Source: Dimorphilus gyrociliatus (taxonomy: Eukaryota > Animalia > Annelida). Taken from it: DNA of 64,000 bases. Below are positions 3,357 to 64,000 of the stretch, in pieces. The notes under the pieces are model-generated. The model was not told where the DNA came from, ran no database searches, and saw only the letters and a program-made list of their open reading frames with translations. The translations under genes and the position numbers were made by a program. Every line of letters starts with the position of its first letter. Position 1 is the first letter of the stretch. The stretch lies in assembly GCA_904063045.1 (NCBI GenBank), contig CAJFCJ010000005.1, positions 2,406,002 through 2,470,001 of the forward strand. Reading direction: 5' to 3'.

Positions 3357-4586
3357 TTATATTATTGGATAATATTGAATTGTAACTTTTATCGTATCAC
3401 CACGATTTGATAAACAGAATATTAATTCTTCATTTGTTATTTTATATTCTCTAAGTGTTTTTCCATTGAATATTTTATCTTCTTCTATTGCATCTGCCAA
3501 TTTCGACTCGGAATTTATCAAATAAATGAATCCATCGTCGGTGAAAATCTTTATACCTTTGTTAATCTTTTGTATTATATCTTCGTAGAGAGAAAATTTA
3601 CTCTTCTTTACGTATTTTATATCAAAATCGTAATGAAGCTGTTCGTTGAAATCAAAATATCTTGCTTTAAAAGCTGATGCCATGCACCAACCGTCCATAA
3701 AGACTTTGTGAGAGTGCATTGTTCCTTGAGTTTCAATAGATGTTAGCATAGATGACGATATCTCAAAACGGTATATTACAGATGAACTATGACTGCTAAT
3801 AAAAACATAGCCTTTAAAAACTGCAAACATTACTGTTGATGGTATCAGTTCTAATATGGGTAAGCATATTTCATTTGATTCGTTATTTTCCAAATTGTGA
3901 ATATAGCAGTAGAATCTATCGTTTAAATGTTTAAGATAAGCTAAATTACCATCAGAAGTTGTAGATATATCTAGAATATCTCTATTCTCTGAAACCAACG
4001 AAATTTGTGTCTCTAAATTGATAATTTCATTACAGCGATTAAGTGCAATAAAACCTTTATTAGTAAGGATAACCTTACTAGGTTGCTCTTTCAATCTTAT
4101 TGAATGTTCTTTAATAGGTTTCTCGTAAGCGGTTTCAATGATATCTCCAATATTTTTATCAATAGTTAGTAGAGATTTTTCAAAAATTGTATACTTTTTA
4201 AAGAATAATTTCGTCGAATAGAGGAATTCTTTAGTTAAATTTAATAAATTCCTTTGAATTATAGCGTTTGTTGAACTTATTTGTAATTCGTGCAAAAGTT
4301 TTGTATCAGATATTGCTTGTTGTAGAGTTGCTTTCTTCTCGGCATAGAATTCATTAATCTCATTTGTAATAGACATTTTCTGTTTAAGAATAAAAGTAAT
4401 TAGGTTCATTATGAATTGATCCATTTTTTTCTTATCAATTTCTCGATTTTTATCAATTTCATTTAATTCATGTTCAACTGTTGAACGCAGTGATTGCAAT
4501 GAAACAACCAAAGAATCTTCTTTCTCATCTGAAGATGGTAAGCTGTTGCATTCATTTTCTAAATTTTCTGTCATATGTTTATCCAT
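3357..4586 (-). CDS. RING-less coiled-coil + beta-propeller-like protein (TRIM-NHL-like family member 1)
   Basis: 409-aa ORF: acidic N-terminus, coiled coil, NHL-like blade DISTTSDGNLAYL, family C-terminal module (SLYEDIIQKINKG...DKIFNGKTLREYKITNEELIFCL). Confidence 0.75.
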   Translation of the reverse strand: MDKHMTENLENECNSLPSSDEKEDSLVVSLQSLRSTVEHELNEIDKNREIDKKKMDQFIMNLITFILKQKMSITNEINEFYAEKKATLQQAISDTKLLHELQISSTNAIIQRNLLNLTKEFLYSTKLFFKKYTIFEKSLLTIDKNIGDIIETAYEKPIKEHSIRLKEQPSKVILTNKGFIALNRCNEIINLETQISLVSENRDILDISTTSDGNLAYLKHLNDRFYCYIHNLENNESNEICLPILELIPSTVMFAVFKGYVFISSHSSSVIYRFEISSSMLTSIETQGTMHSHKVFMDGWCMASAFKARYFDFNEQLHYDFDIKYVKKSKFSLYEDIIQKINKGIKIFTDDGFIYLINSESKLADAIEEDKIFNGKTLREYKITNEELIFCLSNRGDTIKVTIQYYPII

Positions 4587-4804
4587 TATAGATAGCCTAT
4601 TATAATAAAAATATATATCACATGGAATGTCCCTCTTATATCCCGAATATCGCTACGAAATAACAACACAAAAGATTGGTTTTTTATTTTTTTAATTAGG
4701 GCACAAATTGTATTCCACAATAATTAAGTTCAGTGTCCAATAAATATTATTTACATTAGGTTCTTAGCCTTTAAAAATGACTTCATGATTAAAATATATT
4801 AATT

Positions 4805-6067
4805 TTATATATGGGAATTAGGATAGTAGTGAATGCAAATATGTTTGGGATCGTTTAAATGGATTAAACACAATTTTACCTCAATATCTGTTATATTACA
4901 TTCTTTCAAAGTGAATCCCTTAATTAACTTATCTTGTTCAATTAAGGTTGCTGTCCATGTTTGTTCATCAATTATGAAAATGTTATGATTAGTGCAAAAT
5001 ATTTCCCTACCTTCGTTGAGTTTATGTATAATGGAATCGTATAACGAATAGTTATGCGATTCGTTTTCTCTTATATTGAATTGATGGTAAAAGCCATCAA
5101 TAGAGTTAAAGATAGCAATTTGAGACGAACCTCCAACGCATAAACCATTGGTAAACGACTTGTTATCGAATATCTCTGATTTATTTTCTAAATCAATCAT
5201 TCTCGATGAAGTTATATCGTAAAAGTAAACTTTCTCTCCTTTCTGACTTCCTATTATAATGCTATGTTTAAAAACTGCGAACATGACTGTTGAAGAGTCA
5301 ATATTGCATTTTGGTAAAATCGTATCACTAGATTCATGAATGTCAAGATTCACTATTGTGCATATAAATCTATCTTTATCGAAATGAAGATACGCTAAAT
5401 TGTTATCATAAGTTCTACAAATATCCAATATCTTCTTTGCTGTTGAAATTAAACGTTTTCCACTTTCCAATTCAATAATTCTATAATCAGTTTCCAAAAC
5501 TATAAATCCTTTCCTTGATGTGATAATCTTTTTTGGTGAATTATCAAATTTAATTGACAACTCCTTAATTGGAATCTCGTAAAGTGGTTTAATCAACTTT
5601 CCAATTTCTCCACTTAAACATTGATCTTTTCGATCGAAATGAATAGTTTTTTCCAATAGATTATTAGTAGAATAGATAAAATCTTTCGTAAGCTTTTGTA
5701 AAGATTTTGGATTAATGAAATTTGTTGAATTTTGTTGTAATTTCTCCAAACGATTAATATCTTCTAATGCTTTAGCAAGATTAACTTTCTTATCTGTATA
5801 AAAGTTATCAATTTGCTCCATAATAGATTCTCGTTTCTTTTTAATACTAGTAATTAATTCAGTGATTGAATTATTGACAATTTTCTGTTGTTCTTCTCTT
5901 TGATAATCAACTTTATCAATTTCCTGTTCAATTGTTGCGTCAAAACTTTGTACTTCCGCTTTCAAAATATTAATTTCATTTTTAAGGAGAAGTTTTTGAT
6001 TTTTAGGTGAAATATTAGAGTAAGAATCTTGATTTTCTTCCAACGTATTTTCATTCAATTTATTCAT
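4805..6067 (-). CDS. RING-less coiled-coil + beta-propeller-like protein (member 2)
   Basis: 420-aa ORF; DICRTYDNNLAYL; SLYDSIIHKLNEG...EQDKLIKGFTLKECNIT. A possible acceptor (tttgcag) near 6111 means an upstream exon cannot be excluded. Confidence 0.75.
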   Translation of the reverse strand: MNKLNENTLEENQDSYSNISPKNQKLLLKNEINILKAEVQSFDATIEQEIDKVDYQREEQQKIVNNSITELITSIKKKRESIMEQIDNFYTDKKVNLAKALEDINRLEKLQQNSTNFINPKSLQKLTKDFIYSTNNLLEKTIHFDRKDQCLSGEIGKLIKPLYEIPIKELSIKFDNSPKKIITSRKGFIVLETDYRIIELESGKRLISTAKKILDICRTYDNNLAYLHFDKDRFICTIVNLDIHESSDTILPKCNIDSSTVMFAVFKHSIIIGSQKGEKVYFYDITSSRMIDLENKSEIFDNKSFTNGLCVGGSSQIAIFNSIDGFYHQFNIRENESHNYSLYDSIIHKLNEGREIFCTNHNIFIIDEQTWTATLIEQDKLIKGFTLKECNITDIEVKLCLIHLNDPKHICIHYYPNSHI

Positions 6068-9060: not shown

Positions 9061-9099
9061 TAATACAAGATTTAATAATTAAAAATATTATAGTAAAAT

Positions 9100-10956: not shown

Positions 10957-12503
10957 CTATTCAGGTTGTTGTTTGTCAATAGAGAATTGAACGTATTCAT
11001 TTTCCCACCAACTTTTCTTGAATTTTCTCAATAATAGGCATGTAACATAGAATATGCTACAGAAAAAGTAAGATCCGCATCCAAGGTAGAATAGCGAATG
11101 AAAAGAATGAGTTAAATCGAAGAGGGCACCTGTAAAGAAACAAAAGGAAGAGACAGGTTAATGTGGAACGTATGTTTTAGGGGAAAAAGACAAAACCTGC
11201 AAGAGTTGGTCCGATAAAGGAACCAATGCCCATAGATATTCTGAAAATCGAGAATGTTTCCGACAGATGTCTTCCATCGTGAAGTTCTATTGATGCTGAT
11301 ATTTGGGCTGCCATTATTGGACCATCAAATAGACCAAGAGCTATTAAATTACAACCATTAGTTTGTTTATATCGTGCTAGTTGTATAGCTTACCAATAAT
11401 GTAAATGAGAACAGTCGGAAAATTATATGTGAATATAGCAAAGCAGTTTGTCAATGACAACAGTAAACTGGCGACTGTGTACGAAAAGATTAAATGTCCT
11501 TTAAGGTTATCTCCAAAGAGGGAAAAAATTAAACGACTAAGTCCCTCGCAAATACCCATAACAGACATTCCAATACTAGCTTTTTCCGGTGAAACTCCCA
11601 AGCTTGTCATGTAGTGAACCTATTCAAGTTATTAACAATACTATTCATAAAGCGACAAAAAACTATGCTTTATAACAAACCAGAAACATAATGGAACCTG
11701 AGTATCCAACACTGCGAAGGCATGTTGCAAAAAACCAACACATTCCGACAATTATTCTTGTCTTTTTTTTTAATTGCCCTTCTTCAGCCGGTCGAATAAG
11801 AGGAATTGTTTCGTCTCTCTCACCCGCCTTATCTTCCAACTGGTCAGGATCCACAACCCCCAGAGAGAACGGAAAGCAAAGAAGGAATAGAATTAAACCG
11901 TGTATACCGAATGTCTTCTGCCACCCGAAATTACGAATAAGAATTTCTAATACTGGATTTAGAATAAAAGTACCCAAAGGATATCCGCAAGTTAATAAAC
12001 TATTAATAAGTACGTGTCTTGGATGGCTAAATGGATAAAAGCGATTAACTGTAAAATATAATGGATTGATCATTAAACAGCTAGCCGGACCAAACAGAAT
12101 TCCGAAAAATACCAAAACAGACCAAAAATTCGCATAAACCCCAGTTAAAGCAAGAACTAATGGTCCAAAAAAGGATCCTAACATTAGGCATTTTCTAGTT
12201 CCTACTTTGTCAGCAACAAAATTGGCAAATGGAGCGCATATATAAACCAGAGCTAGGGCACCAGACGCAATTAACCCTACAAATTGAATAGTTTTTGAAT
12301 GATTAGAATTATATTAACTATAGATTTTGAACAAATAAATAAAAAGAATCACCTAAATAGGCTTCTTGGTTAGAAATGCTTCCTTTTAAAGGTGCAATAT
12401 ATTCACCAAAAGTAAAGAATGATCCGCAACTTGCCGAATAAATAACAATACAAAAGAAACAGACAAAAGGTCCACGGAAACTCCTAGTGTTCCATTTTTT
12501 CAT
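10957..12503 (-). CDS. MFS transporter, SLC16/monocarboxylate-transporter-like, multi-exon
   Basis: Spliced reading MKKWNTRSFRGPFVCFFCIV...FTFGEY / GLIASGA...APFANFVADKVGTRK...LIRNFGWQKTFGIHG / ...GIGSFIGPTLAG / ALFDLTHSFHSLFYLG...QPE*; MFS motif-A-like loop and hydrophobic helices. Confidence 0.85.
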
Positions 12504-15390: not shown

Positions 15391-16773
15391 GTGAAGGACA
15401 ACAATAAAAAAGAGGAAGAAGAGAGTTACCTTCTCTTGTTATTTTACCATATATTACGTTTGTTTGCTTTCATAAAGCGCACAGAATATATGTATCGCTT
15501 CACTACTCAACGTAGCTTCAGACGATTAATCGAAATAGAAGATATTTTATTGGGAACTATGGACGAAACAACGGCTGATATGCAAGAATTTGAAATTCAA
15601 AAATCATATATTGATAATACCAAAGAAATGGCTGAAGAAATTATTAACAAACTTAAGAAAATCGACGAAGAAAAGGAGAATGAAACGAGTAAGCTAAATT
15701 ATGAAATTACTAAATTAGTAGTTTCTATCCGTAATCAACAATCTTCAGTTCAAGATCAACTTAATAACTTCTATGAAAAGAAGAGAACGATGCTATACGA
15801 AATTTATGAGAATATAAGAAAACTTGATAAATTAGCTGAAGGAGATTCGGAGGAAAATAATACCAATAATTTTTTAACGATAATGAGTAGAGTCAATACA
15901 TTAACTGATAGTTTTAAGAGAAAAGAAGAAGCGTATTTAAAGACTGCCGAATTTTTTGATGGTTCTACCATTGGAAGATTATTTTTTACTACTCCAGATG
16001 TTCCGGTTCATGAATATTCTATTGTGGTTGAAGAAAAGCCAATAAAGGTTATATCAAACTCTGAAAGTTTCTTTACTATACAAGGTAAAAATCGTATTAT
16101 TAATCTAAGGAATCAAGTAGTACTGGGTCAAGTTGCTGATACGATTGATGATATAGCAATAACTTCGGATGGTAGATTATCCTTTATTATAGTTTATAAT
16201 TGGGAAGAGAGCGCCGTTAATATCCTACCTAAAGGAACTCATAAACCAGAAGCGTATAAACTAGAAAATGCATTTCTTAGATCAGGAAATTGTAAATTTA
16301 CAATTCTGAATGATAAAATAGTCGTTGGAGATGGAAATTTGACATCCATTTTCTCGACAGAGAGTAGAAAAAGAGAAAAAGTTTGGAGGTTATGGTCGTC
16401 CAGTCAACATTATAAAATTAAGGATAATACATTATATCAGCTATCCGATAATACTTGGGTATCTTATACAGATAATCAATTAGGAGAATTTCGCCAAGTT
16501 CACGATTATTCGGACACAACTACTCCGATACTTAAAGTTCTTATAAGAAAATTAGTAGCGGGAAATATACTGTTTTGCCTAAATGACTATATAACATTAA
16601 TTGATCCAGACAAGAAGAATGCTATCTCTATAAAAATGCAATTAATATTTCCCGATAAAACGTTATTGGACTATCAAATAAAGAACGACGAAGTAATTCT
16701 CTGTCTTCATTGTAATATTGATCCATGTAAAATTTCCTTTATGCATTTTCCCTACAAATTCATCTTGAATTAA
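15391..16773 (+). CDS. RING-less coiled-coil + beta-propeller-like protein (member 6)
   Basis: ORF track 460 aa; true start probably ATG 15559 (MDETTADM). DIAITSDGRLSFI; PILKVLIRKLVAG...IFPDKTLLDYQIKNDEVILCL. Confidence 0.75.
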   Translation: MKDNNKKEEEESYLLLLFYHILRLFAFIKRTEYMYRFTTQRSFRRLIEIEDILLGTMDETTADMQEFEIQKSYIDNTKEMAEEIINKLKKIDEEKENETSKLNYEITKLVVSIRNQQSSVQDQLNNFYEKKRTMLYEIYENIRKLDKLAEGDSEENNTNNFLTIMSRVNTLTDSFKRKEEAYLKTAEFFDGSTIGRLFFTTPDVPVHEYSIVVEEKPIKVISNSESFFTIQGKNRIINLRNQVVLGQVADTIDDIAITSDGRLSFIIVYNWEESAVNILPKGTHKPEAYKLENAFLRSGNCKFTILNDKIVVGDGNLTSIFSTESRKREKVWRLWSSSQHYKIKDNTLYQLSDNTWVSYTDNQLGEFRQVHDYSDTTTPILKVLIRKLVAGNILFCLNDYITLIDPDKKNAISIKMQLIFPDKTLLDYQIKNDEVILCLHCNIDPCKISFMHFPYKFILN

Positions 16774-17900: not shown

Positions 17901-18968
17901 TTAAGGTTGATCAATTTCGTAAGAGCAGATGCTCATTTCTTTGCCAATTTCTGCAAACGCTTTTATATAGACGGCTTGACAGTAGTTAAAACCACAAGTA
18001 CATGTATATGTACAATCTGTCCCACTATATTCAGTTTTCAGTTTGCAGCCTCTAAATTGCCCAGAAAATATCGCATCAGTTTGATCATCGAGGGGTATAA
18101 AGGTTGTTAAGCCCGTTAGGGGAGACTGTTCCGAAAAATGAAAACATTTAGACATATCTAATCCTCTTATTCTTATTTCAAACTCTGTGGTAGGTTTACC
18201 CAATGAAGGCCATGGTATTCGTAAATAGAATTCATTCTCAGCCGTTACTTTTACGCATGTATCAGCTAAATTGTCAGTTAGATTCGTGAGACGTTGACTC
18301 TTCTGATTTAGAGAGTTATGGAAAATTGGACCAATGAGACAAGTTGTTTGATAAGGCTTAGATCTAAATTTATCGCTGAAAACATTGCATAATTTCTTTC
18401 CCAAGAAACAAGAGTAATTATCTTTTTCGTGGGAAAGAGTAATATGAGTGCAACTTGAGGTTGCTTTACAGTTTGCGAGACAAGAAGTAAGGGGATCGCT
18501 CCTGTATGTAAGAAGTCTTTTAACTCCAGGTTCATCGTAGCAGTGGGCTTGAAAACAAGTTAATTCCGGATGAGCTTTCCTATTATATTGCATCTCTGAT
18601 TTACTTTCAACAACAGTTGTTGTAACAACCTGAGATTTAATAGTACAAAACAAATCATCGACTACGTAAGAAAAGCTTGCACATGCTGGAATTTTTAAAC
18701 ATTCTTTAGCGCATTTAATGGCTGTTGAACTGCTGAATGTATTTAATATAACATTGTTACTTGTCTCTTTCCCATTCATCGTATTGAATCCACGAATGAA
18801 ATTTTTCGAATAACTACAAATTCCAGAATTCCACATGCAACCATAAGCGATACACAAAGTTTCGTCTATCGACGATCCTCCACACTTAAACTTTACGGAT
18901 GGAATTACAGATTGGACTCTAAAATTGAATAGTATAGAGTAGCTGATTAGAAATATATTCCAGTACAT
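17901..18968 (-). CDS. Secreted protein: trefoil-like, two PAN/Apple-like domains, Cys-rich C-terminal domain
   Basis: Signal peptide; CGGSSIDETLCIAYGCMWNSGIC; CAKECLKIPACASFSY..C; CLANCKATSSCTHIT..C; single exon, 355 aa. Confidence 0.65.
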   Translation of the reverse strand: MYWNIFLISYSILFNFRVQSVIPSVKFKCGGSSIDETLCIAYGCMWNSGICSYSKNFIRGFNTMNGKETSNNVILNTFSSSTAIKCAKECLKIPACASFSYVVDDLFCTIKSQVVTTTVVESKSEMQYNRKAHPELTCFQAHCYDEPGVKRLLTYRSDPLTSCLANCKATSSCTHITLSHEKDNYSCFLGKKLCNVFSDKFRSKPYQTTCLIGPIFHNSLNQKSQRLTNLTDNLADTCVKVTAENEFYLRIPWPSLGKPTTEFEIRIRGLDMSKCFHFSEQSPLTGLTTFIPLDDQTDAIFSGQFRGCKLKTEYSGTDCTYTCTCGFNYCQAVYIKAFAEIGKEMSICSYEIDQP

Positions 18969-19610: not shown

Positions 19611-20009
19611 ATGGATTGTCCATTTTGCTTTCGTACTATTACGACTAAACAAACTTCTTCATTTGGTTTTAGATTAGGAGATTACATCTGTTCAAAATGT
19701 ATAAAGGAGAAAAAATTGAATAAAAAGTATTCAATTGAGAATAATACTCACAAGTTTTCTTTCAAAACTCGTCGTATAACACCAAATAAAGAAGATGTTG
19801 TTAATGTTAAACACAATTCAAAGTTAGAATTGAATTTTAACAGTGAAAATCAATGTTCAGACATTCAATTAGAAGAGACAAAAAACGGCGAAGAAGAGTT
19901 TAATAGAATAATTAAATCTTGTCAAGAAATAAATAATTTACAACGCGAAATAAATGAAAAGAGAGAGGATTTGTTAAACGATATCGAAAGGTTAGAAAGA
20001 AGGCCGTAG
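19611..20009 (+). pseudogene. Truncated family derivative: half-RING + short coiled coil (member 7)
   Basis: MDCPFC...ICSKC retains only two CxxC pairs (no LPC..H, no CPxC), then a coiled coil, then a stop at 132 aa. Confidence 0.5.
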
Positions 20010-20565
20010 TTGTTTAAAATTGGACTATTAAATGAAAAGAAAAATTATACAACACTTCTAAAAGGGTCAAATCTTAAAGAACATGTTTATTTCAATTAAT
20101 AAAAGACGCTTTTTTGTTAAATATTATGAATAATTAAAGAAATAAATATTAAAAAAAAGATTCATACTTTCTTATTACTTGAACCATTAAAAAATATTTA
20201 AAAGGATTGAAACTGTAAAAAGATAGCCTATTATGCTGTTTTTTGTTGTTGTATGTATATTATCTATTTTTATCTAGACGTATAATTAAAGTTATAAATA
20301 TATAGATAATATAACAATAATATACTATACTTCAAAATGTAAATCATGATTAATTGAAATTGAGGAAGAAAAAAGCTTTTATTGGTCTCTACGACACCTC
20401 TGAGCACACCTGTTAGTGTTCTCAAGCGTTGACAAGACGACAGACAGACAGACAGATAGACAGAGAGAAGAAATTATTATCAATAACCTACATACAGAGA
20501 TATACATACACTTCATATACTGTATATATTATAATTCAATACAGTAATAACTATCAGTGTGCTGT

Positions 20566-21606
20566 TTACTCTTTCACCGACTTAGCTATTTGCTCACTGT
20601 GATTTGTTGTATGTCTGGTATTATAATTGCTATTCTTATAGCCAAACAATTTAAACATTTCTTTAATAAAAGTTTTTCCAGATAGGCAATAGAATACAAA
20701 ATTAACCACGTGATTAAAGCTATTAAATGAGATAAGAATTTCAGATATAAAGTATTGCGGTTGAGGTATACCGCGACTTGTATCTACTGTTCGAAAGTAT
20801 ATTGTTAACAAAGAAAGTGGTACAGTAAAGATAATGAACGCTGAAGATACTAAAATTGTTGTCATGGTTAATCTCTTTGCGGAATCTCTTAATTTCGTGC
20901 TCTTGTCTTTCATACTATCTTCTGTGGAGGTTATATGACTTTTCAAGCTTCTTATCATGAGTACATTTAATATTACTAGTAAGGTTGATGGAATTAGCGA
21001 ATAAACCACAATATAGTTTGTTAAAATGTGAGTTCTAAAGATATCAAAGATTTTGGTGTAGGATGACGAACATATGATAAGATTTTTCGATAGTCTTATT
21101 CCTTTATCGTAGATGACGAGAGGTAGAAAGAACAAGATGCAAGAGTATAAATACAAACACGCAACAACTTTATTACACCTTCCAACAGTAGACCATACTT
21201 TTGCTTTCGTTGGCCAACTAACGCAAATATATCGATCAAAGGTTACCGCCACAAGACACATGGATGAAATTTGATTTGCGCTTAGTCCAAGAAAATACGT
21301 AATTTTGCAGTTAAACCACATATAAGTTTCCGGTGACATCTTTTCAATCAAGAAAAAGCTTATACCTCTTATCGAATAGCTAAAGTTGACAAGAAAGTCA
21401 GCCAATGAGACAAATGCCATATAGCGAAATAGAGTTGTATTTTTTAAATTACTCTTGAATATTGTTATAATTGATATTAAATTGAATGGTATTCCAAATA
21501 CAACGCCAATTGGGAATGATATATATGGAAATATTTTTGGTGTAAGCCAATCCAATTTGGACATTTCACTCCCAAAAAAGTTAGTACTATTCATTGTTTT
21601 CTTCAC
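20566..21606 (-). CDS. Class A (rhodopsin-like) peptide GPCR, single exon
   Basis: Seven hydrophobic segments; GIPFN, LADF, FDRYICV, IFTVP, NHVVNFVFYCLSGKTF. Confidence 0.9.
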   Translation of the reverse strand: MKKTMNSTNFFGSEMSKLDWLTPKIFPYISFPIGVVFGIPFNLISIITIFKSNLKNTTLFRYMAFVSLADFLVNFSYSIRGISFFLIEKMSPETYMWFNCKITYFLGLSANQISSMCLVAVTFDRYICVSWPTKAKVWSTVGRCNKVVACLYLYSCILFFLPLVIYDKGIRLSKNLIICSSSYTKIFDIFRTHILTNYIVVYSLIPSTLLVILNVLMIRSLKSHITSTEDSMKDKSTKLRDSAKRLTMTTILVSSAFIIFTVPLSLLTIYFRTVDTSRGIPQPQYFISEILISFNSFNHVVNFVFYCLSGKTFIKEMFKLFGYKNSNYNTRHTTNHSEQIAKSVKE

Positions 21607-26641: not shown

Positions 26642-26685
<44 letters not shown>

Positions 26686-47324: not shown

Positions 47325-50207
47325 TTTAACAAACTTTTCCGGCTGTCCAATAGGAACTTTTGAATGTAGATATGGAAGATTTTGCATTAGTTCCAATTAC
47401 GTTTGTGATGGTTATTCGGATTGTTTATATTGGGAGGATGAAGTTAATTGTACATCAATTTATCATTTCAAGTGTACATCGGGTGAATTAATTAATGTAA
47501 GATTAGTATGCGATATTATAGGTGACTGTAAGGATGGGAGTGACGAAGCAAACTGTTGTAAGTTATATGTTTGTTAAATTCTCGTAATTAGCCTATTAAT
47601 TCAAGAAATATAATAAAACCAGCCTTTCTATGTCAGTCGACAAAGTAAGATTAACGCAAGTTATTAAGGACTCATTTAATAAAGTTTATAATTTATCAGA
47701 TGCGATAATGGACAATGTATATATCCGGAAGATTTATGCGATAATCAGAGACATTGCGTTGATAGCAGTGATGAAAACTGTAGTCCTCGTATGTATAGAA
47801 CTTGTTAATACTATTCACTACTATTAAATGAAATCAAATCAAAACTAAGCCTGTACCGAAAAGAAATTTCAATGCGGTAATAGATGTGTACCTATAATTA
47901 ATCAATGCGATATGAAAACGGATTGTGAAGATATTCTCTCCTCTCATAAATCTTTGTCGTGCTTTAAAGAATTCAACTCAAAGATGAATAGAACAAGATC
48001 ATTTTGGCATATATCTTTAAAAGATACTCTTTGTCATCTAATTTACGATTCTATGGAAAATATGCTAATTGAAATTCATTTTCCTTTCTACAATTTGCAA
48101 TTTTGTCGTACAAGTAAAAAGTGTCAACAAGGAGAATATAAATGTCAAAAAGTGAACTATTGTATATCAATCAATCAAGTATGCGACGGTTTAAGTCATT
48201 GTCTATATCTAGATGATGAAATTGATTGCCGTAAGTTTCATCACCTTGAGAAGATTTTATACTGGTTCATATGAAAAAAAGGTCACTATTTGCTGTTTAA
48301 GAGGATATTGTAAGAAATGAAAAGAAAGCATTGATTACCTAAACCATAAGCAAAACTTATCCTCCCTAACTGCAAATCGACTGGCCATTTTTAAGTGAAC
48401 TAGGGTCAAATTACATAACATTTTAATTTTAATTTTTAATGTTTAGATCATTTTGCACCAAAAGGATATTTTAAATGTCGTTTACAAAATCGTTATCTAA
48501 ACTTTTATCAAGTCTGCAATAGAAAACTGGAATGTCTACACGGCAATGACGAATACTATTGTATGTTAAATAAAAATTGCCCTAGAAACTGTACATGCAA
48601 TCAATCTTTTGGAATGATTTGTAATCAATCATCAATAGTCGATTTAATATATGAATCCGCTAGAACAGTTCAACTAATATTACCAAATGATAGTATTTAT
48701 CATTATCTACAAAATTCCGCCTATATCGTCTATTTAAACATTTCGTTTGGACGAATAACGCATTTTCTGATTAGAAATTATCCAAATCTAGCTATATTAG
48801 ACCTACAAAATAATTTAATTAATAAATTAAATAATTCATTAAATATCATTTTATATAAACTGCAATATTTGGATTTAAAAGACAATAGAATACAAGAAAT
48901 TGAAGATTACTTTTTTAAAATTACTCCTAACTTATTACATCTTGATTTATCTAATTCAAATATTCGATTTATAACTAGTAATAAATTAAAAGGACTTGAA
49001 AAGTTAACCATGTTAATAATAGTTAAAAGTAACTTGTACAACATTGAAAAAGAATCTTTTAAATACTTTCTAAACTTGAAAGTATTGTTTATGAATAAAA
49101 CTCATCTTCCGGAAGATTATTTCAGTGATTTTATATATTTTCTACCGAAATTACAATATCTTAAAAGTGAATATTATCAATTTTGTTGTTTGGTTAAAAG
49201 ATTTAGTTTTAATCTTCAAAAATGTCAACCAAAAGAGACAGTACTAAAATCTTGTAAACATCTTATAGGATCATTATTTCTAAGGATTATAACTTGGATT
49301 ATAATTGTATTTTGCCTAATTGGGAATATTTTTAGTTTAGTAGCCAAAATAAAATGTTTTAAATCAATAATATACATCTGGCATATTGGATTGAATGTTT
49401 CGGATATAATTTCAGCCATTTATTTGACAATTATTGGTATTATTGATCAATACTACTTTGGGAAATATATCCAAAATGATATGGCATGGCGGAATAGTAT
49501 TTTATGTAAAACTATTGGAGTTTTTAACAATTTTGCAATCTTATCATCAACTCTATTCATTCTGGTAATTACCATTGATAGATATATTGCTTTTAAGAGT
49601 CCTTTTAAAAAACATTATATTGAGAAGACTACTGCAATAGCTGTACTTATGGGGATAATCGTATTAGGCTTTATCCTTTCAACTATTCCCTTTCTTTTTA
49701 ATAAAGTTTGATATAAGAAATTCCATTTTGCCATTTCTTCTATGAGTCTTAATATCTATTTTATAGAAATACTATTCAATATCTACAGTTTGTTTTACAC
49801 TGCATCTAACCCGAAAGAAACATAGAGGATGGCAATATTCTTTTATCGTCTTTAGTTGTTTTATGATGTTGATACGTATATCTATAATCTTTCTATATAC
49901 TTCTATTGTGAAAATAGTACTTGGCTCTAAAAAGCTAATAAGTCAATACCACTATAAGAAACGTAAACGCAAAATGTTATCATTTAGTTTATTAATCGTT
50001 ATAACTAATACGTTATGCTGGTTCCCAATTTCACTTTTGAATCTAATGGCTACTTTTAATATATCCAATATTTCTGAAAAGATACACGTATGGATAATTA
50101 TCATTCTTTTACCTTTAAATTCATCGTTAAATCCTTATATTTATTCGATTGGTGAAATCTTACTCCTACTAAAACGGCGAAAGATTAAATCTGAAGTTGA
50201 ACAGTAA
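47325..50207 (+). CDS. GRL101-like LGR: at least 6 LDLa repeats + LRR + 7TM GPCR (5' end uncertain)
   Basis: LDLa repeats such as CPIGTFECRYGRFCISSNYVCDGYSDC..WEDEVNC; LRRs LxxLDLxxNxI; TIDRYIAF, CWFP, LPLNSSLNPYIY. Intron before 49767 keeps the frame. Confidence 0.88.
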
Positions 50208-51231: not shown

Positions 51232-52560
51232 TCAAAAATATTTCAATAGAATCTCTTTTCCATTTTGACTCTTAACTGCAAAGACGATAGTACCATTGTT
51301 CTTTGTATAACCAAGTATTTGTCCTTCTATTATATCCTTTTGTTGGTAAATTACTGCTGTTTCAAATTTAGTATTGATTGCATATATAAAATTTGCATCG
51401 AATAGTAGAATACCATTATTTACTAAATTTATAACTAAACTTTTTAAACAAGTTGCGTAATTGATTGAATTCTTGCACTGAAATGTTGAATTAACTATAA
51501 TACTTCTGTTGCTGGTTAATTTGTGAATTTTCATATCTGCTTCTAATAAATATAGAGCGTCATCGTAATATTTTGTGTCAATTATCATTTTATCTCCGCT
51601 ATAGGCTATAAAATTATTTGTAGTACAATCGTAAGTTAGGAGATGATCCCTAACTGAGAAGAACATTTGTTGGATTTCATTTTTATTGACGGGTTTAGTT
51701 CCCCGAGTAATTGTTAGATTTTCATTTTCCTCTATAGCAGTGAGATTTGGAGCAGCTTTTAATATCCTTGCTTTAGTAATACTCTCGAATTCGACCAAGA
51801 GATAGAGACTTCCGTCAGGACCTCGACATATATCGTAATTTTCCGATTGAAATTTATAGTTTAGATCGTGGGCTACTGTTAGCTTTCTGGCTTCTTCTTC
51901 ATCCTTGCATGAAGATTTATATTTTCGATAATCCAAGTTGAATATATATTGTTCGTTGAAATTTTCCACATTAATGAATGTAACGTCATTTGGTGTTTTT
52001 AGAATTGCGTACATTTTATTCGAAAAAGAACGAACTCTTGTAATTATTCCATTTACCGAAATTCTTTTCTCTCGTTGATGTTCGACCCTATTATTTGTGT
52101 AACTCAACTCACCAAGGACAAAATTTTCTACAATTCCTGCTGAATTGTAAACAACTTCCGGTTTAATGACGTCCCTCTGTATCTTTTGCAGTTTGCTCTT
52201 TATTCCTTCAATTTGATCGTCTAATATACCAGAAGCGGAACTCGTCGTAAAATCAGGTGCTCTTTGTAATAGGGAATAATAATCCAAAACGTTCTTAAGC
52301 TCATTTTGCTGTTGTCCATAAAAACTCTTCAATTCATTAAGCAAGCGGGCTTCCTTATTTTTAATTTGCATAACCATATCCCAAGCTTGAGTGCTAACCT
52401 TCTTCATTTCAGTTTGCTTCTTCTGTTCAATTTTTTGTATATCGTCAAAAACTGACTTTTTCAAATGACCAAAATAACTTGTTTTTCCATGATTTATCTG
52501 TTCAGTAGCAGCTCCACTGCGGGGCCCTACTTCTGGATCCGCTTTAGGTTTATCCTCCAT
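51232..52560 (-). CDS. RING-less coiled-coil + beta-propeller-like protein (member 13)
   Basis: 442-aa ORF; coiled coil; DICRGPDGSLYLL; CLKSLVINLVNNGILLFDANFIYAI...QKDIIEGQILGY. Confidence 0.72.
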   Translation of the reverse strand: MEDKPKADPEVGPRSGAATEQINHGKTSYFGHLKKSVFDDIQKIEQKKQTEMKKVSTQAWDMVMQIKNKEARLLNELKSFYGQQQNELKNVLDYYSLLQRAPDFTTSSASGILDDQIEGIKSKLQKIQRDVIKPEVVYNSAGIVENFVLGELSYTNNRVEHQREKRISVNGIITRVRSFSNKMYAILKTPNDVTFINVENFNEQYIFNLDYRKYKSSCKDEEEARKLTVAHDLNYKFQSENYDICRGPDGSLYLLVEFESITKARILKAAPNLTAIEENENLTITRGTKPVNKNEIQQMFFSVRDHLLTYDCTTNNFIAYSGDKMIIDTKYYDDALYLLEADMKIHKLTSNRSIIVNSTFQCKNSINYATCLKSLVINLVNNGILLFDANFIYAINTKFETAVIYQQKDIIEGQILGYTKNNGTIVFAVKSQNGKEILLKYF

Positions 52561-56430: not shown

Positions 56431-57291
56431 ATGCCTTCGATAAAGTGTATGGAATCAACTTGCGAATATTGTTCTCTTCTTATTGAAACTGATAAATGGC
56501 CTATTTACGATTCAATAGGTTACGTTCACATAAAACAAACTCTACTGTGTAGTACCGTTAATATAGCTTTCGTTTATATTTGTAAAAAGTGTATAAACAA
56601 AATTGCTAGTTATACCGATAGATCAATTAGAGAACTATTGAAAGAATTAATTTTAGATTCAAAATCGAAATCGCCAGTAACTGCTATAGGACGTCACATT
56701 AAAAAGTGCGGACATGAGAATATTTCAATATTGCCTATTTATAAATTTAATAAAAACGAAACTGAAAAGGATGAAATTCTTAAATGGATTGCGGCGACAT
56801 TATCTGAAAATGCTGCAAAATTCTTTCATAGCGAAGAACGACGCAAAGCCATAAATGTACTTGAGCCTATTAATATTGAAATTCAATTTGGTTTGTCAAC
56901 TTTTTACGCAATTATAAGGGAAAAAGCTATAGCTTGCGAAACGTTTGCAACTTATTCGTCTAATTCGAAATCGGAGAATAAATCTACCGAAACTGATTCA
57001 GATAATCAAGAAGACGCAATAAGAGTTTTGAAAGACGAAATAAAACGTTTAAAGAATGTTATCAAAGAGCAAACAGAAAAACCAAAACTTCCCGATTATG
57101 GAAAGCCATTAATTCATTTATTCGACGGCAAAAATACCCATAATCTATTTGTAATGAAAACTTTTAATGAAAGATTGTATATGGAGGATACATTGAAGAG
57201 TTTAAAGAGAAACTTTTCAAAGAGATCACCGCAAAAAGAGGTTGAATATAGTGAAACGGCTAATAAACATTATTATCATTATATATATTAA
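56431..57291 (+). CDS. Penelope-type GIY-YIG-derived protein, catalytic residues replaced, with C-terminal coiled coil
   Basis: KCMESTCEYC...LCSTVNIAFVYICKKC..IASYTDRSIRELLKEL...IGRHIKKCGH...KWI parallels the PLE endonuclease pattern C-x4-C-x2-C...C.S.NVIY.I.C..C..YVGET.R.L..R..EH...A.HF....H...E..WI; intact 286-aa ORF. Confidence 0.6.
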   Translation: MPSIKCMESTCEYCSLLIETDKWPIYDSIGYVHIKQTLLCSTVNIAFVYICKKCINKIASYTDRSIRELLKELILDSKSKSPVTAIGRHIKKCGHENISILPIYKFNKNETEKDEILKWIAATLSENAAKFFHSEERRKAINVLEPINIEIQFGLSTFYAIIREKAIACETFATYSSNSKSENKSTETDSDNQEDAIRVLKDEIKRLKNVIKEQTEKPKLPDYGKPLIHLFDGKNTHNLFVMKTFNERLYMEDTLKSLKRNFSKRSPQKEVEYSETANKHYYHYIY

Positions 57292-57334: not shown

Positions 57335-58351
57335 TTAAAAAGGAAGTAATACTATTTCACAAATTTCAACGTCTCCTATTAAGTCTAACGAGTATAAGAA
57401 ATATTGTTTTATTGGTGAGGCTAAACAATTGTATACGCAGTTATCTATAGTTGTACATTGTCTTGTCCTATCATTTTCATCTTTAGATACCATACCAAAT
57501 TTTAAGCATTGAGAATTACTTCCTAATATCTTAAATTTTCGATGATTTACCTCAGTTTGAATATTTAAATAAAAATCTGATGCTTTAAATTTCATACACG
57601 TCGATACAGATTCGTCCAATAAAACATGAAGTTTTTCATTTTCGCATTGATGGAAATGATTAACGGTTAATTTAGCTGTAAGCCTCTTGGAACATTTTAA
57701 TTTTCCAACTGCAAAGTGAATGATCTCGTCATGTCCTGTAGGGTCTGTACCAGTGTCGCCAGCCTCTATTTTTTTTAAAGGCAATCTTTGAGGTAAAACT
57801 GAAAATTTTCCAGTATGGTTAAACGATGGACTGTGAGTTTCGTTTCCCGCATCTCTACAAGTTAGCTCATTGGAAGCGTCTTCGTCGCAAACTTGTCTTA
57901 AGAAACATTTACAAATTCCATCAGGAGCGTCATTATAATTAACTATGAGTCCATCCCAAAAAATAAAGTGAGTAAATGACAAATGAGAAAAATAGTTGTA
58001 AAAGTACATAGTCTGAGAACAAGTTCCCGCCGTTCTCAAATACTCATCCATCTGCGTTTCATTAAAATTTCCATACATAATAGTCCTCTTATAACTATAC
58101 TGGAATTCATAACCATTAATTGTAGTATTCTCTTCGAAATTATTACCCAAAGTTGATTCAATATGTATATCATTCACAACTTGGCAGTATATGTTTGTTA
58201 TAGAACCATATTCGATTGGTTGAATATCGTAAAAACCATTTGCTTGATTAGTAACAATTGCTTCAGAGCAAGACTTGAATACAGTTGAATCCGTAAACTT
58301 TACTAAAAGATGTACATAAATAATTATAGCATATATCTTTTCTATTGACAT
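57335..58351 (-). CDS. Secreted protein with a Caspr/neurexin-IV-type fibrinogen-like domain + Cys-rich C-terminal domain
   Basis: Signal peptide; SCSE...GFYDIQP...IYC...CSQ...W.G...CKC..C...C...LP...GDTG...GKLKC. Confidence 0.65.
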   Translation of the reverse strand: MSIEKIYAIIIYVHLLVKFTDSTVFKSCSEAIVTNQANGFYDIQPIEYGSITNIYCQVVNDIHIESTLGNNFEENTTINGYEFQYSYKRTIMYGNFNETQMDEYLRTAGTCSQTMYFYNYFSHLSFTHFIFWDGLIVNYNDAPDGICKCFLRQVCDEDASNELTCRDAGNETHSPSFNHTGKFSVLPQRLPLKKIEAGDTGTDPTGHDEIIHFAVGKLKCSKRLTAKLTVNHFHQCENEKLHVLLDESVSTCMKFKASDFYLNIQTEVNHRKFKILGSNSQCLKFGMVSKDENDRTRQCTTIDNCVYNCLASPIKQYFLYSLDLIGDVEICEIVLLPF

Positions 58352-59255: not shown

Positions 59256-60626
59256 ATGGATGATTGTACCACCGATTGCCCGATATGTTTCAATGAGTTT
59301 TTGGATGGTTTAGTACCACGACAACTGCCTTGTAGTCTACACCATATTTTGTGTACTGATTGCCTTGTAAAGCTGGGGGAAGCAGCCTTAGAAAATGAGA
59401 GCAAATTTCTTTGTCCCCTCTGCCGTACTGAAATTTTATGGTCGTCAAGAGGAGCCGATGCTTTTGAGAAGGTATCTGTAAAAGATCTATTTTTTAAATT
59501 ATTTAGGAGAGAATTAGCTCACGAAAGAGTAAGGACGATAAAGGATGAAGAAGACGAATTAAAAATTTTAGATTCCGCCGCCAAACAATTGCATCTTCAA
59601 ATTGATAAACAAAGGACAAAATTAGGATTCAAATTGCAGAATTATCATCAAGAGAAAGCAATGGAATTGTTAACTTTAGAGAAGGAATTGGATTCTGTTT
59701 TAGAATCTACAGCTTCAACAAATGGAATAGATTTAACAGGATTAAGAAAAATGCTATCTATGAGATTGGAACAAATCACAAAAACCTCTTGTTCATTAAA
59801 AGTAAATTGTCAGAATGTGAATTTTGCAGAGATTAACTTATCAAATACGTTAGAGCCAATAAGCACTTATTCTAAACAGGTTAACTATTCACCAACAATT
59901 ATTCGTGGGAAGAAATGGTTCTTTATAATCACATCTTCGTCAATATTGAAAATTAGACCAGAGAAAATAATTGAATATCCTAATGATTGTCATATTTCGG
60001 AAGTGGCTAATTCAAGTACGAAAAATCTTTACGCTTTAAGATGTGAGTTTAATCAATACTGTCCTTTTAAGTGGAATGATATGGATGATTCGATTGTTGA
60101 AATTGAATTTTACGCTCCACTGATCGATAAGGATAAATCTTTCGGAGAGAGAACAGTCTGCTTTATTAAAGGAGTTGACTTAATATTATACGATACTAGC
60201 GACTGTATATTAAAAATAAAAGAATGTTTTTTCAAAGAACGCCCACTCTGTTTTAAAACAACGTCTAATGGCTTATTAATTGTTGTTTTAAATAGATTTA
60301 AAGTTGAATTTTGTCCAATTTCAAAGTTGAATGAAAAAGAAACATTTCACGGAAGTCCTATTCTATTCCGAGGTGTTGAAAAACTTTTTACAATTAAAAG
60401 TCTACTTAGAGATTTAAAAAGAGGATTTCGAATGTTAACAACAAAAGAATTAATTTATCTTATTAGTCCAAATATGAGATATACAAGAGTTTTTTCACAA
60501 GAGAACTTTCCTTCAGAAGGTAGATTAACTGATTTTTTAATGACAGAATCAATCTTTCATCTTTGTTTTGTTAGAAAAGTAAATAATTGTTTTGATTGCG
60601 TTGTTAAATGTTATCCAGTAGATTAA
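59256..60626 (+). CDS. RING-HC + coiled coil + beta-propeller-like protein (member 14)
   Basis: CPIC...LPCSLHHILCTDC...CPLC...WSSRGADAF; TIKSLLRDLKRGFRMLTTKELIYLI...ENFPSEG. Confidence 0.8.
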   Translation: MDDCTTDCPICFNEFLDGLVPRQLPCSLHHILCTDCLVKLGEAALENESKFLCPLCRTEILWSSRGADAFEKVSVKDLFFKLFRRELAHERVRTIKDEEDELKILDSAAKQLHLQIDKQRTKLGFKLQNYHQEKAMELLTLEKELDSVLESTASTNGIDLTGLRKMLSMRLEQITKTSCSLKVNCQNVNFAEINLSNTLEPISTYSKQVNYSPTIIRGKKWFFIITSSSILKIRPEKIIEYPNDCHISEVANSSTKNLYALRCEFNQYCPFKWNDMDDSIVEIEFYAPLIDKDKSFGERTVCFIKGVDLILYDTSDCILKIKECFFKERPLCFKTTSNGLLIVVLNRFKVEFCPISKLNEKETFHGSPILFRGVEKLFTIKSLLRDLKRGFRMLTTKELIYLISPNMRYTRVFSQENFPSEGRLTDFLMTESIFHLCFVRKVNNCFDCVVKCYPVD

Positions 60627-60941: not shown

Positions 60942-61890
60942 ATGACACAATTCAAGAAAACTTTTCCTATAAAGCAAGATGAGACATGTGAATTAAAAAA
61001 TGGCTATTCATACGATAACTATAAACCTTTTACACTGCAAAAAGAAGTTATTTTGAAACTTGATGCCCCAATTATTAAAATACGATCTTTTCCTACTGGA
61101 ATATACATTTTTTATGGTTTCTTACATAAAAATAAAACGGAATATTCCTATTTACAAAACAGATTTTTTGAAACAAAGATGAAAACTAGAAATACAATTT
61201 TACATGAGAGAAAATACTGTATAAATTATGAGTCAAAGGAGAATTTAAATGATATAAGTGGCCTTCATTCAATAGATGATATTTGTTTCTTGAACGATTT
61301 TAATTTTCTCACGAAATGTGAAATGAACAATTCCAATAATTCGTCAACAATTTGGACTACTAATGGTAGGTGGAGAAATTATCAATATAGATATCAATAA
61401 CTATATACTTTGCTTTGTAGGTTGCGTTACAGAATCTAGTATTTCTCTTGATTCTGGACCTTTTTTCTTATCCGAAGGAATAATCTATAGTGGATTTCAA
61501 CACGGTTTATATAAGTATTCTCTCAAAAATAGAGTAATTGATATGAAAAACTTTAAAAATACAGTAATCTGGTTAAATGAACATGGATCAATCTCAAAAT
61601 TATCGCCAAATGAAATATTTCCAAAAAAATTAAGCCTAGAATATAAAAAAGATGACGAGGGATTAGCTATTGTCATTTCTAAATTAAAGGAAGGATACGA
61701 TCTTCTCTTCGACAAACATAATATATATATTATATCTTCAAAAATAGATAACGTTATTGTTGTTCCACAGAAAAAAGCTTTTAAGAATTATTATGTGTTT
61801 GGTTATCGAAGCGAAGAAAAACATATTCTACTTGCTTTAATTAATCCTGCTGCTATAAATAGAATTTGTGTCAAATATTATATTATATAA
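60942..61890 (+). pseudogene. Propeller-only family copy with a frameshift (member 15)
   Basis: Two overlapping ORFs in different frames (shift near 61325). The second carries the family module AIVISKLKEGYDLLFDKHNIYII...QKKAFKNY. No RING or coiled coil upstream. Confidence 0.65.
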
Positions 61891-61975
61891 TCTTTTATTA
61901 ATTCTTGCTAATGTACAACTGTTACTCGTTATTTGTCCTTGTTGACAAGATTGTTCATTTAATAATAAAACAAAT

Positions 61976-63563
61976 AAAGTCAAGGCCTAAAATACCCGGA
62001 CACTGTAAATTTTGATAGGTCAATTTTGAAAACACCCCAAGAATGTTATCTTTGTTTTCAATTGGTTTTTTTGTCTAAATTTCCATGAAGAAAGAGTTAT
62101 ATTTATGTAATACTGACAAAAATTATAGAAAATTATCATATTTGTGAAAATTATTAGCAAAATTTTTTTATTAATTTTTATTGTTTTTTTCTTTATTTGG
62201 CCGTAAGTCCAAATTAACCGTACATCCGGATTACATCTGGTTTTGCGTTTAAATAGACGTCTTAAACTGACATTTTTTTCAACAAAATTAATTTTCAAAG
62301 TTAAGTTGATTACTTATTATCTATTTTACCTACTTTAGTTAATTTTTATATCATTTATTTCATTATGGCATGGGGAAAAGAGGTTAGGAACCTGGTAATT
62401 CAGAAATATGAAGAATTGGGGAAAGTAAGGGAAACTGCAAGGGCTTTGGGAATGGCATCATCTATAGTTAGCGACATTTTAAGGTATAAGCCACCCAAAC
62501 AAGAGAATAGGGGTCGTCCAAAGAGACTCACAGAAAGAGATGTAGCAAGAATGAATAGGATTATGAAGAGACTTAAAAGAAACAAGGAAAGGGTAACTGC
62601 TAGGAAGATTTTAAATGAATTAGAGGTAGATGTAGGCCTGAAGACAATTCAGAGAGAGTTGAAATTGCAAAATTTTCGTTATAAACGAATTCGACAAAGA
62701 GTTGATCTCACAAGCAATGACTGCAAAAGAAGGAAACAGTATTGTTTAAAAACTATTCGAGATAACTTAGATTGGTCAAGAGTCATATTTACGGATGAGG
62801 CAAGGTTTTCATTGAGTGGTCCTGACGACTTCAGGACCTGGACAAATGACAGGGAAAAAGAGATGAGATTAACAAAAAATATGGGCAGAGGTGGAGTAAT
62901 GGTTTGGGGACTGATAACCTCGGATGGTGTGTTTGAGGTATGGAGAGTAAGCAAAAGATTGAATGCCCAAAACTATGCTACATTTGTGGTCGAAGATGTT
63001 CTCCCAGTTATAGAAGAAATCTCAGATAAAATGGGGAGAGATTATATCTTCCAGCAGGATAATGCTGGGTGACATACTGCAAGAGTTACCAGCAGGGCAT
63101 CCAGGATGAACGGCATACATCCAATCGATTGGCCAGCTAAGAGCCCTGATCTTAGCCCAATAGAAAATGTGTGGCACCTGACCAAAAATTTGGTTTACGA
63201 TGGGGCACAATTCACATCAGAAGATGAACTATGGGAGAAAATTAAAAAATGCTCCTACGAACTTATAAACAAAAATCCTGACTTGCTACCAAATCTGTAT
63301 GCTGGAATGGGAGGGTAGGATCAGTACGTGCATTGAGAAAGAAGGTCACCAAATACAGAAGTAGTAAAAATATTAGTCCCCAAACCATTGTCCAGAATAA
63401 TGTGACTCACAGCCAAATAAGAAAAAAACTTATGAAAATATACACTACATAAAAATGAAAAAAATTATGTAAAAACTTATCTAAATACTATTTGATAGAA
63501 ATTTCTATGTAGATTTTTAATCTTCGGCCTATCAAAATTTACGGTATTTTAGACCTTCACTTT
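61976..63563 (+). mobile_element. Tc1/mariner DNA transposon (DD34E)
   Basis: Inverted repeats C(T/C)GTAAATTTTGATAGG at 62003-62019 and 63528-63544, with further inverted similarity outward to about 61976 and 63563; transposase inside. Confidence 0.88.
62365..63364 (+). pseudogene. Tc1 transposase with one premature stop and a C-terminal frameshift
   Basis: HTH GRPKRLT; FTDEARF; QQDNAG*HT...WPAKSPDLSPIENVW (D-34-E). TGA at 63070-63072; frameshift near 63315 restores RISTCIEKEGH. Confidence 0.88.
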
Positions 63564-63647
63564 GATCCTACTCTTGATTAGGTAGCAATCTTTAGTATTG
63601 AAGATAGCGACTCTTGTTAATTGTGTCTCGTACTCTGCGTACAAAAT

Positions 63648-64000
63648 ATGTATAAATGCCTGGTGTGTCAAACTCAATTGATTGAGAGAAATCTGAAGAT
63701 TTTACCGTGTAATCCTGATCATATTTTGTGTACAAGTTGTTTAACTAACATTTCCAAATATCTCTTATTAAAGGAGAATGATAAATTTGCGTGTCCGCAA
63801 TGCAAGATCAACGTTACCTGGCCATGTTCCGGAATAAACGCTTTCAGTTCAATGAAACAAATATTGATGGATAATGACAAAAATAAAACTAAAGTGGAAA
63901 ATGAGAATATTTATCTTGATCACAAAGGAAGTAAACATTTAGAAGAGTTAATGAAATCAATTTCAAATGAAATGACAATCGCAATTCAAAACATTGAATA
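63648..64000 (+). CDS. RING-HC family member 16 (truncated by window end)
   Basis: MYKCLVCQ...LPCNPDHILCTSC...CPQC...WPCSGINAF; frame open to the end of the window. Confidence 0.75.
   Translation, partial: MYKCLVCQTQLIERNLKILPCNPDHILCTSCLTNISKYLLLKENDKFACPQCKINVTWPCSGINAFSSMKQILMDNDKNKTKVENENIYLDHKGSKHLEELMKSISNEMTIAIQNIE

Follow-up and report, generated by a model that had tools for sequence, protein, structure and literature searches.

What kind of protein is encoded by a dense run of intronless genes that resemble TRIM ubiquitin ligases at one end and end in a domain that profile libraries do not recognize? The question is raised by a 64,000-nucleotide stretch of the genome of the annelid Dimorphilus gyrociliatus (assembly GCA_904063045.1, CAJFCJ010000005.1, approximately positions 2,406,002-2,470,001 of a 4,546,684 bp scaffold), which was analyzed at its full length and is called the window below. 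The genes in question form a lineage-restricted array that derives from the TRIM2/3/56 kind, has no B-box, and carries a new propeller family. We consider it fairly probable that this is a large and old tandem array of TRIM-derived genes, in which a C3HC4 RING of the TRIM2/3/56 type is followed, with no B-box between, by a helical region of ~100 residues and a propeller of ~250 residues, the RING-bearing members being dimeric E3 ligases and the RING-less members ligase-dead binders or partners.

Twelve uninterrupted, intronless open reading frames (ORFs) of 397-462 amino acids in the window belong to a single family. They are alignable end to end at 14-24% identity to the first sequence, and a family profile run against the six-frame translation returns each of the 12 with an E value of 1e-85 to 1e-131, consistent with the intronless full-length paralogs reported in a first-pass annotation of this DNA. 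The window is AT-rich (27-35% GC), and because a stop-free run of 400 codons has a chance of ~1.5e-15 at its base composition, the frames are taken to be real and maintained. Seven of the 12 full-length genes lack a RING; the other five have either a RING or a decayed RING (Table 1).

The RING, the missing B-box, and the coiled coil

The ancestral protein is TRIM-derived, with an N-terminal RING and post-RING segment, a shorter TRIM-like coiled coil, and a propeller. In an alignment of 19 RING-bearing members (alignment A5), C8, C11, L24, C26, C33, C36, C53, and C56 are invariant; seven of these are zinc-ligand cysteines, and the eighth is the Leu of the LPC motif. The Pro of CPxC (P54) and the Gly of WP-x2-G (G66) are conserved in at least 90% of the same sequences. 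The motif C-x2-C...LPC-x3-H-x2-C-x2-C...CPxC...WP-x2-G-x3-F, which the first-pass annotation had drawn from the window, is seen in this alignment. When a profile of the RING and the adjoining helix was compared with Protein Data Bank (PDB) sequences, TRIM2 (1.2e-12), TRIM56 (1.9e-10), and TRIM3 (5e-10) were found ahead of RNF4 (1e-6), the best non-TRIM RING, and TRIM32 (5e-6). The alignment extends through the post-RING P-x-x-G-x-x-x-[FL] segment, in good agreement with the earlier assignment to the TRIM2/3/56 class on the strength of that segment. RING Pfam profiles match the window genes at 27846, 39090, 41207, and 59256 as well as the partial copy at 42738-43409. The Ile or Val after the first Cys, the usual E2 contact, is kept in 18 of the 19 members, and a Lys or Arg directly follows the last RING Cys in 13 of them. 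The gene at 37731 and its orthologue P0028 have an Arg where other members have the zinc-binding His and a Gly or Asp after the last Cys; their RING looks decayed.

The first-pass annotation had also pointed to a missing B-box. No Cys/His cluster is seen between the RING and the helix in the members, and the family-wide Pfam scans, which covered 56 members, gave no zf-B_box match at E ≤ 5. In a full-length AlphaFold2 (AF2) model of the 59256 protein (mean predicted local distance difference test score, pLDDT, 80.7), the RING is followed by helices and then 24 strands, and the helix begins at residue 75, right after the RING. The coiled-coil region corresponds to the helices at residues 75-151 and 160-176 of this model; coiled-coil profiles match the window members only weakly (TRIM_CC, E 0.021; PML_CC, E 0.03). 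A profile of the RING-bearing members matches the coiled coil of the RING-less members with E values of 1e-5 to 1e-10, and the two kinds of members share a common origin. The order of RING, coiled coil, and propeller that had been proposed for these proteins is found in this model and, for its last part, in the model of the isolated C-terminal domain.

The C-terminal propeller and its nearest comparisons

An AF2 model of the C-terminal domain of the 3357 protein, built from an alignment of 51 sequences, has a pLDDT of 92.6 and a predicted template modeling (TM) score of 0.87, with 23 strands and one inserted helix that is a conserved S-x3-DII-x2-L-x2-G element. From the models, the C-terminal ~250 residues are predicted to be a beta-propeller, probably with six blades at ~42 residues per blade. 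A Foldseek comparison of the domain with the PDB agrees: all 50 of the 50 listed matches are propellers or propeller-containing chains (E ~1e-8 to 1e-6, TM 0.35-0.55), and at least 500 matches lie at E ≤ 0.001. The top matches are COP1, PRP19, and DCAF1 for the full-length model and Fbw7, glutaminyl cyclase, G-beta, designed 6- and 8-bladed propellers, TolB, and BamB for the domain alone, and no propeller class is prominent among the best 50. Conservation is highest and indels are fewest in the last ~80 residues, and the center is the most variable part; a conserved terminal module and a hardly alignable center had been described at first reading.

The propeller had further been called NHL-like, a description that these comparisons do not sustain. 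Even at E ≤ 5, none of the 56 members is matched by the NHL (PF01436), WD40, or Kelch Pfam profiles; a search of the PDB with the family profile gives no NHL chain at E ≤ 10; and no NHL structure is among the best 50 Foldseek PDB matches of either the full-length or the domain model. In the viral library BFVD the best geometric fit is to an NHL repeat protein (TMt 0.55, root-mean-square deviation 5.9), which stands amid WD40 and Kelch proteins with better E values. Across the fold searches, WD40, Kelch, PQQ, TolB, and NHL propellers come up without preference for any of them. The motif D-I-x4-D-G-x-L-x-[YF], which had been read as an NHL-like blade motif common to the family, occurs once per protein, is confined to the seven RING-less window members, and fits strictly in two of those seven; it is not a repeated blade signature. 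The sole significant match of the domain profile among PDB sequences is a PQQ-like repeat protein (3hxj_A, E 8.8e-7; best single stretch, i-E 0.0045), and at E ≤ 5 no PQQ Pfam family has matches in more than one of the 56 members. For the one member whose Pfam matches were listed in full, none is below E 0.01. Judged by these profiles, the propeller appears to lie outside every described sequence family, with NHL ancestry neither shown nor excluded.

Taken with the RING and the helices, this domain suggested to us how the proteins may work. The coiled coil would pair two chains of RING-bearing members, the RING would recruit E2~ubiquitin, and the RING-bearing members would act as dimeric E3 ubiquitin ligases whose target is bound by the propeller. 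One clade dropped the RING while keeping the coiled coil and the propeller, and its members would most likely be ligase-dead binders or coiled-coil partners of the RING-bearing paralogs.

Known proteins share parts of this plan. TRIM2 and TRIM3 (class VII TRIM-NHL) are like the family in RING and post-RING sequence, in the order of RING, coiled coil, and propeller, and in six-blade size, whereas the family has neither a B-box nor a filamin domain, a shorter coiled coil, and a propeller unmatched by NHL profiles; TRIM2 and TRIM3 are also one or two conserved genes, whereas the family is tandem and intronless with at least 37 copies. TRIM56, the second-best RING match, has B-boxes, unlike the family. 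It is an antiviral ligase, and its C-terminal region has been described as NHL-like although it matches NHL profiles poorly. NHLRC1 (malin) resembles the family by description in that its single-exon gene encodes a RING and, after it, a six-bladed NHL propeller, again without a B-box, but it is described as a single conserved gene with true NHL repeats and no long coiled coil. COP1 and PRP19 (RING or U-box, coiled coil, WD40), the top Foldseek matches of the full-length model at E 8e-8 to 1e-6, follow the same logic of an E2-binding finger, a helical oligomerizing stalk, and a propeller receptor. Their propellers, however, are seven-bladed WD40 domains with recognizable repeats, whereas the strand count of the family fits six and no member scanned matches WD40; whole-chain TM scores are only 0.23-0.31, and there is no sequence relation. 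Fish finTRIM, primate TRIM5/22, and bivalve TRIM-like proteins are analogous in mode, being RING/coiled-coil ligases that were duplicated locally and whose C-terminal binding domain varies. Such lineage-specific TRIM expansions have B-boxes, mostly B30.2/SPRY domains, young duplicates, and site-specific positive selection, whereas the copies of this family are old and saturated at synonymous sites. General background is given in PMC2533329.

Distribution, orthology, and rates of change

The distribution of the family was searched among 1.84 billion representative proteins with a profile of the propeller domain alone and no length filter; kin with the same RING and coiled coil but another C-terminus may exist. 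The domain is present in 62 of these proteins, nearly all of 355-531 amino acids, the exceptions being an 889-residue model with a long low-complexity N-terminus and the 1204-residue gene model CAD5114567, described below. The source was looked up for 30 of these proteins, and every one traces to D. gyrociliatus or to Logan assemblies of SRR23372216, SRR23372229, and SRR23372231; a homologue search with a single protein gave nothing beyond the query and one Logan protein. The contigs of these Logan assemblies are genomic and derive from a different species, referred to here as the relative. As far as these searches go, the family appears to be found so far only in D. gyrociliatus and this one relative, and the D. 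gyrociliatus genome paper names it neither in its text nor in its supplements.

On scaffold 5 (CAJFCJ010000005.1) the family spans from at least position 2,375,988 to ~2,608,000, and ~10 further full copies, together with several fragments, occupy the 25 kb immediately upstream of the window. A second cluster on CAJFCJ010000002.1 has four full copies and one split copy, and a further pair lies on a 1.72-Mb scaffold. Summed over loci, the genome-wide count is at least 37 copies. The record CAD5114567 (DgyrCDS3676, 1204 amino acids; L009:10001-14932, scaffold 5 ~2,385,988-2,390,919) wrongly merges three tandem paralogs, and at this place the six-frame profile search finds three complete ORFs (L009 9824-11092, 11282-12730, and 13406-14929).

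In a maximum-likelihood tree of 69 members, 33 make up a RING-less group, and the other 36, which include all members with a canonical RING, make up a second group. The branch that sets off the RING-less group has a Shimodaira-Hasegawa-like approximate likelihood ratio test (SH-aLRT) value of 90 (98 for an inner subset of 31 rows), and the group includes six of the seven RING-less window genes. P0020, which has a variant RING-like N-terminus, sits near the base of this group, a position that fits a loss of the RING in the clade. Within the RING-bearing clade, too, the RING was lost or became decayed, as in the remaining RING-less window gene, 51232, which falls there and would be an independent loss, its position being flagged as a join of two long branches.

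More than 10 one-to-one pairs between D. gyrociliatus and the relative are strongly supported in this tree, including those of 3357, 4805, 37731, 39090, 41207, and 59256, and a 13.6-kb Logan contig (L003) carries seven tandem RING-less copies in an order matching the window genes 6441, 4805, and 3357. Because most copies have such orthologues in the relative, most duplications predate the species split and the array is old. Orthologue identity ranges overall from 41% to 86%, being 41-44% in the window array and up to 86% and 79% in the scaffold-2 cluster. The birth-and-death evolution put forward in the first-pass annotation holds in part. Gene death is seen as fragments in the window (42738-43409 and 61327) and in L009, and turnover as an extra duplicate pair in the relative and two copies that it has where the window has retroelement remains. 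However, most window genes are one-to-one orthologues and there are no young duplicates in the window, where the closest compared pair (3357/4805) is 38% identical. A member of the scaffold-2 cluster is split into a RING/coiled-coil ORF and a propeller ORF ~550 bp downstream in both species (Table 1), which could reflect either an intron or a split that has been conserved; the arrangement suggests that RING/coiled-coil-only ORFs such as 42735-43400 need not be dead.

Nonsynonymous (dN) and synonymous (dS) divergence was computed for nine pairs between the two species, with dS not computable in four of the nine, including the pair used as a baseline. Synonymous sites are saturated (proportion of synonymous differences, pS, 0.67-0.79), so that dN/dS is poorly measurable; it is 0.14-0.30 gene-wide where dS can be computed. 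Across pairs, dN runs from 0.076 to 0.52, a seven-fold spread of rates. Site models of the codeml type would be meaningless on the window paralogs because these are at most 38% identical. The baseline is a G-protein-coupled receptor (GPCR) beside the scaffold-2 cluster (71% identity), with a dN of 0.20 as against ~0.5 for family pairs; it was used in place of the GPCR in the window, whose orthology is doubtful (matches in the relative of 42% and 38%). By region, mean identity between orthologues is 63% in the RING, 53% in the helix plus last blades, 45% in blades 1-4, and 44% in the coiled coil. It had been proposed that the propeller surface diversifies to recognize different targets. With a coiled coil that changes as quickly as blades 1-4, the propeller is not singled out for fast change, and dN is well below dS wherever both can be computed. 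Since the split from the relative, the copies have changed rapidly along the entire protein apart from the RING, with their frames kept, which means purifying selection with weak constraint, plus some gene death.

Several points weigh against the reading of the array as TRIM-derived ligases and their RING-less partners. A number of RINGs are decayed (37731, P0028, P0031, P0046, and P0048). Only 2-24 residues (2-8 in window members) precede the first RING Cys, so an N-terminal helix like that of the TRIM2 RING dimer is probably missing. The TRIM2 RING dimerizes through helices flanking the core on both sides, which is needed for its activity (PMC9732051); by analogy, the RINGs of this family might be weak or might dimerize by another route. 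The blade number rests on strand counts (23-24) rather than coordinates. The tree comes from a quick search, has many long branches, and is arbitrarily rooted, and the orthology of the fast pairs rests on this tree and on gene order in one contig.

The array, its neighbors, and its possible role

Besides the 12 full-length genes, the first-pass annotation had counted four partial copies. Three of these loci are family members, but the fourth (60942-61400) has no detectable similarity to any member and was removed. Of the three, 63621-64000 is not a true fragment, because the window ends within this copy and a run of N follows in the scaffold. A candidate at 19611-20009 was rejected as not significant with deeper profiles (E 0.07), and two giant ORFs (1518 and 1566 codons) that seemingly fuse family parts to other sequence were traced to stretches of N in the scaffold. 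Gaps of this kind (~4 kb) lie inside the array, one right after the last base of the window (L008:14747-18900) and another in L009:16575-21272. Because they cut copies, the true copy number is probably above the readable count.

Table 1. Family members and partial copies in the window, with the split member of the scaffold-2 cluster (HMM, family hidden Markov model; E, expectation value).
Feature	Position	Strand	Observations
RING-less member, coiled coil + propeller, 409 aa	3357-4586	-	HMM E 1.8e-130; AF2 C-terminal domain pLDDT 92.6; 1:1 orthologue L003:8543-9787, 41% identity
RING-less member, 420 aa	4805-6067	-	HMM E 4e-129; orthologue L003:7006-8265, 42% identity; weak TRIM_CC match, E 0.021
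RING-less member, 427 aa	6441-7724	-	HMM E 1e-131
RING-less member, 404 aa	9100-10314	-	HMM E 2e-109
RING-less member, 397 aa	13245-14438	-	HMM E 3e-127
RING-less member	15562-16773	+	HMM E 2e-121; ORF open from 15391; public model (P0008) of 427 aa takes an upstream Met as start
RING + coiled coil + propeller member, 445 aa	27846-29183	+	zf-RING_2 E 1.3e-5; HMM E 3.5e-111
Member with RING that looks decayed, 447 aa	37731-39074	+	Arg for zinc-binding His; Gly after last Cys; no significant RING Pfam match; orthologue P0028
RING + coiled coil + propeller member, 462 aa	39090-40478	-	zf-RING_5 E 6e-6; orthologue P0044
RING + coiled coil + propeller member	41207-42568	+	zf-RING_2 E 4e-4; likely start Met 41216; orthologue P0041
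RING-less member, 442 aa, in RING-bearing clade	51232-52560	-	HMM E 3e-102; tree neighbor P0048
RING + coiled coil + propeller member, 456 aa, modeled full-length	59256-60626	+	zf-RING_2 E 7.5e-7, above Pfam cut-off; AF2 pLDDT 80.7; orthologue P0002, 42-44% identity
Partial: RING + coiled coil only, no propeller downstream	42738-43409	-	ORF 42735-43400; zf-C3HC4 E 2.5e-5; A5 profile E 1.9e-33, positions 3-181
Fragment: C-terminal propeller half, no RING/coiled coil upstream	61327-61887	+	A4 profile E 1.8e-16, positions 129-281 of 283; closest protein P0056
RING + coiled-coil start of a further copy	63621-64000	+	A5 profile E 1.4e-24; L008:14366-18919 reads X from ~residue 127
Split member: RING/coiled-coil ORF + propeller ORF	L007:19104-19871 + 20420-21283; L006:19661-20389 + 21020-21596

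The array shares the window with other genes and elements. A NACHT-like ORF (29659-31773, +, 704 amino acids) and, after a 23 bp gap, an ORF with leucine-rich repeats (LRR) of the ribonuclease-inhibitor type (31796-37375, +, 1859 amino acids) lie between RING-bearing members. Their profile matches (NACHT, E 3.6e-4; LRR_6, E 4.7e-4) are both below the Pfam cut-offs, and the two ORFs probably form a single, very large gene of the NLR type, interrupted by a short intron or a stop. Seeming exons of an LGR-type receptor occur at 47912-48274, 48563-49711, and 49863-50207 (+), with an LDL-receptor class A module, leucine-rich repeats, and a rhodopsin-type seven-transmembrane domain. An intronless rhodopsin-family GPCR (20566-21606, -) has a weak Srw-type chemoreceptor match and a best match in the relative that is 42% identical. 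The protein encoded at 17901-18968 (-) looks secreted and Cys-rich, with weak trefoil and PAN/apple matches near or below the Pfam cut-offs, and further PAN-domain genes lie near family members in L010 15699-20345. Two ORFs at 56431-57291 (+, 286 amino acids) and 57335-58351 (-, 338 amino acids; Cys-rich with a hydrophobic N-terminus) have no Pfam match and are annotated genes in the public record (L008). Single exons of a major facilitator superfamily (MFS) transporter (11663-12184, -) and a sodium:solute symporter (22017-22409, +) lie between family members, so that ordinary intron-containing genes are interspersed in the array. The left end has transposable-element remains (684-1366 and 2587-3147, both -), including a gag-like ORF with CCHC-type zinc knuckles, and the contig of the relative has two more family copies there. 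Near the right end is the N-terminus of a Tc1/mariner-type transposase (62365-63072, +; HTH_Tnp_Tc3_2).

The proteins may plausibly serve immunity or some other kind of recognition, to which the only pointers are the analogy with expanded TRIM families, the NACHT-LRR gene in the array, and the general statement of the genome paper that, of the few families that are expanded, most consist of immune genes duplicated locally. In its full form, as a variable repertoire of immune sensors and E3 ligases of the TRIM-NHL class, with an NHL propeller surface under diversifying selection and birth-and-death turnover, the idea seems to us possible but doubtful. It would accommodate the RING type, the six-blade size of the propeller with its NHL repeat protein as best geometric fit in the viral library, the NLR-type neighbor, the genome paper's statement, the fragments in the window and in L009, the two extra copies of the relative at the retroelement remains, and a dN well above that of the baseline GPCR. 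The same reading, however, meets a propeller with no NHL profile match and no profile match to PDB NHL chains, a motif found only once per protein, copies that are mostly old one-to-one orthologues without young duplicates, a coiled coil that diverges at the pace of the propeller, and low dN/dS values at saturated dS.

The fast but even divergence of whole proteins with frames kept is also typical of reproductive proteins. We regard as unlikely, though worth stating, that the family is fast-evolving but not immune, working in reproduction, in the sex-specific biology of a species with dwarf males, or in general protein turnover, with the RING-less clade as plain scaffolds. The spread of rates, with some members 86% and 79% identical between species, suggests different roles within the family and suits such a reading, against which the NLR neighbor and the genome paper's statement point weakly to immunity. 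More improbable still is a Dinophilidae-specific repertoire in which RING-less and RING-bearing paralogs pair through the coiled coil into combinatorial heterodimeric E3 ligases with two different propellers, serving innate recognition through a new propeller family, linked to an NLR, and kept in a streamlined 74-Mb genome. That the array is selfish or dead DNA, made up of genes that transposable elements carried or copied, or mostly of pseudogenes, is very improbable and largely refuted already, for although the copies are intronless and gag-like and transposase ORFs and several fragments are present, twelve ~400-codon frames are open, each against long odds, frames are kept in both species despite saturated synonymous sites, gene order is conserved between the species, and the domains fold with high confidence.

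We thus favor an old array of TRIM-derived ligases and RING-less partners. In this family, the RING module of the TRIM2/3/56 type has survived with no B-box and with a propeller unknown to profile libraries as its partner, and a whole clade has lost its RING yet stayed conserved as open reading frames. The propeller is a new beta-propeller sequence family worth a Pfam entry. An array of at least 37 genes that is kept expanded is conspicuous in the otherwise streamlined 74-Mb genome of D. gyrociliatus, and if RING-less and RING-bearing members do pair, it would provide a simple natural system for how coiled-coil ligases mix recognition domains.

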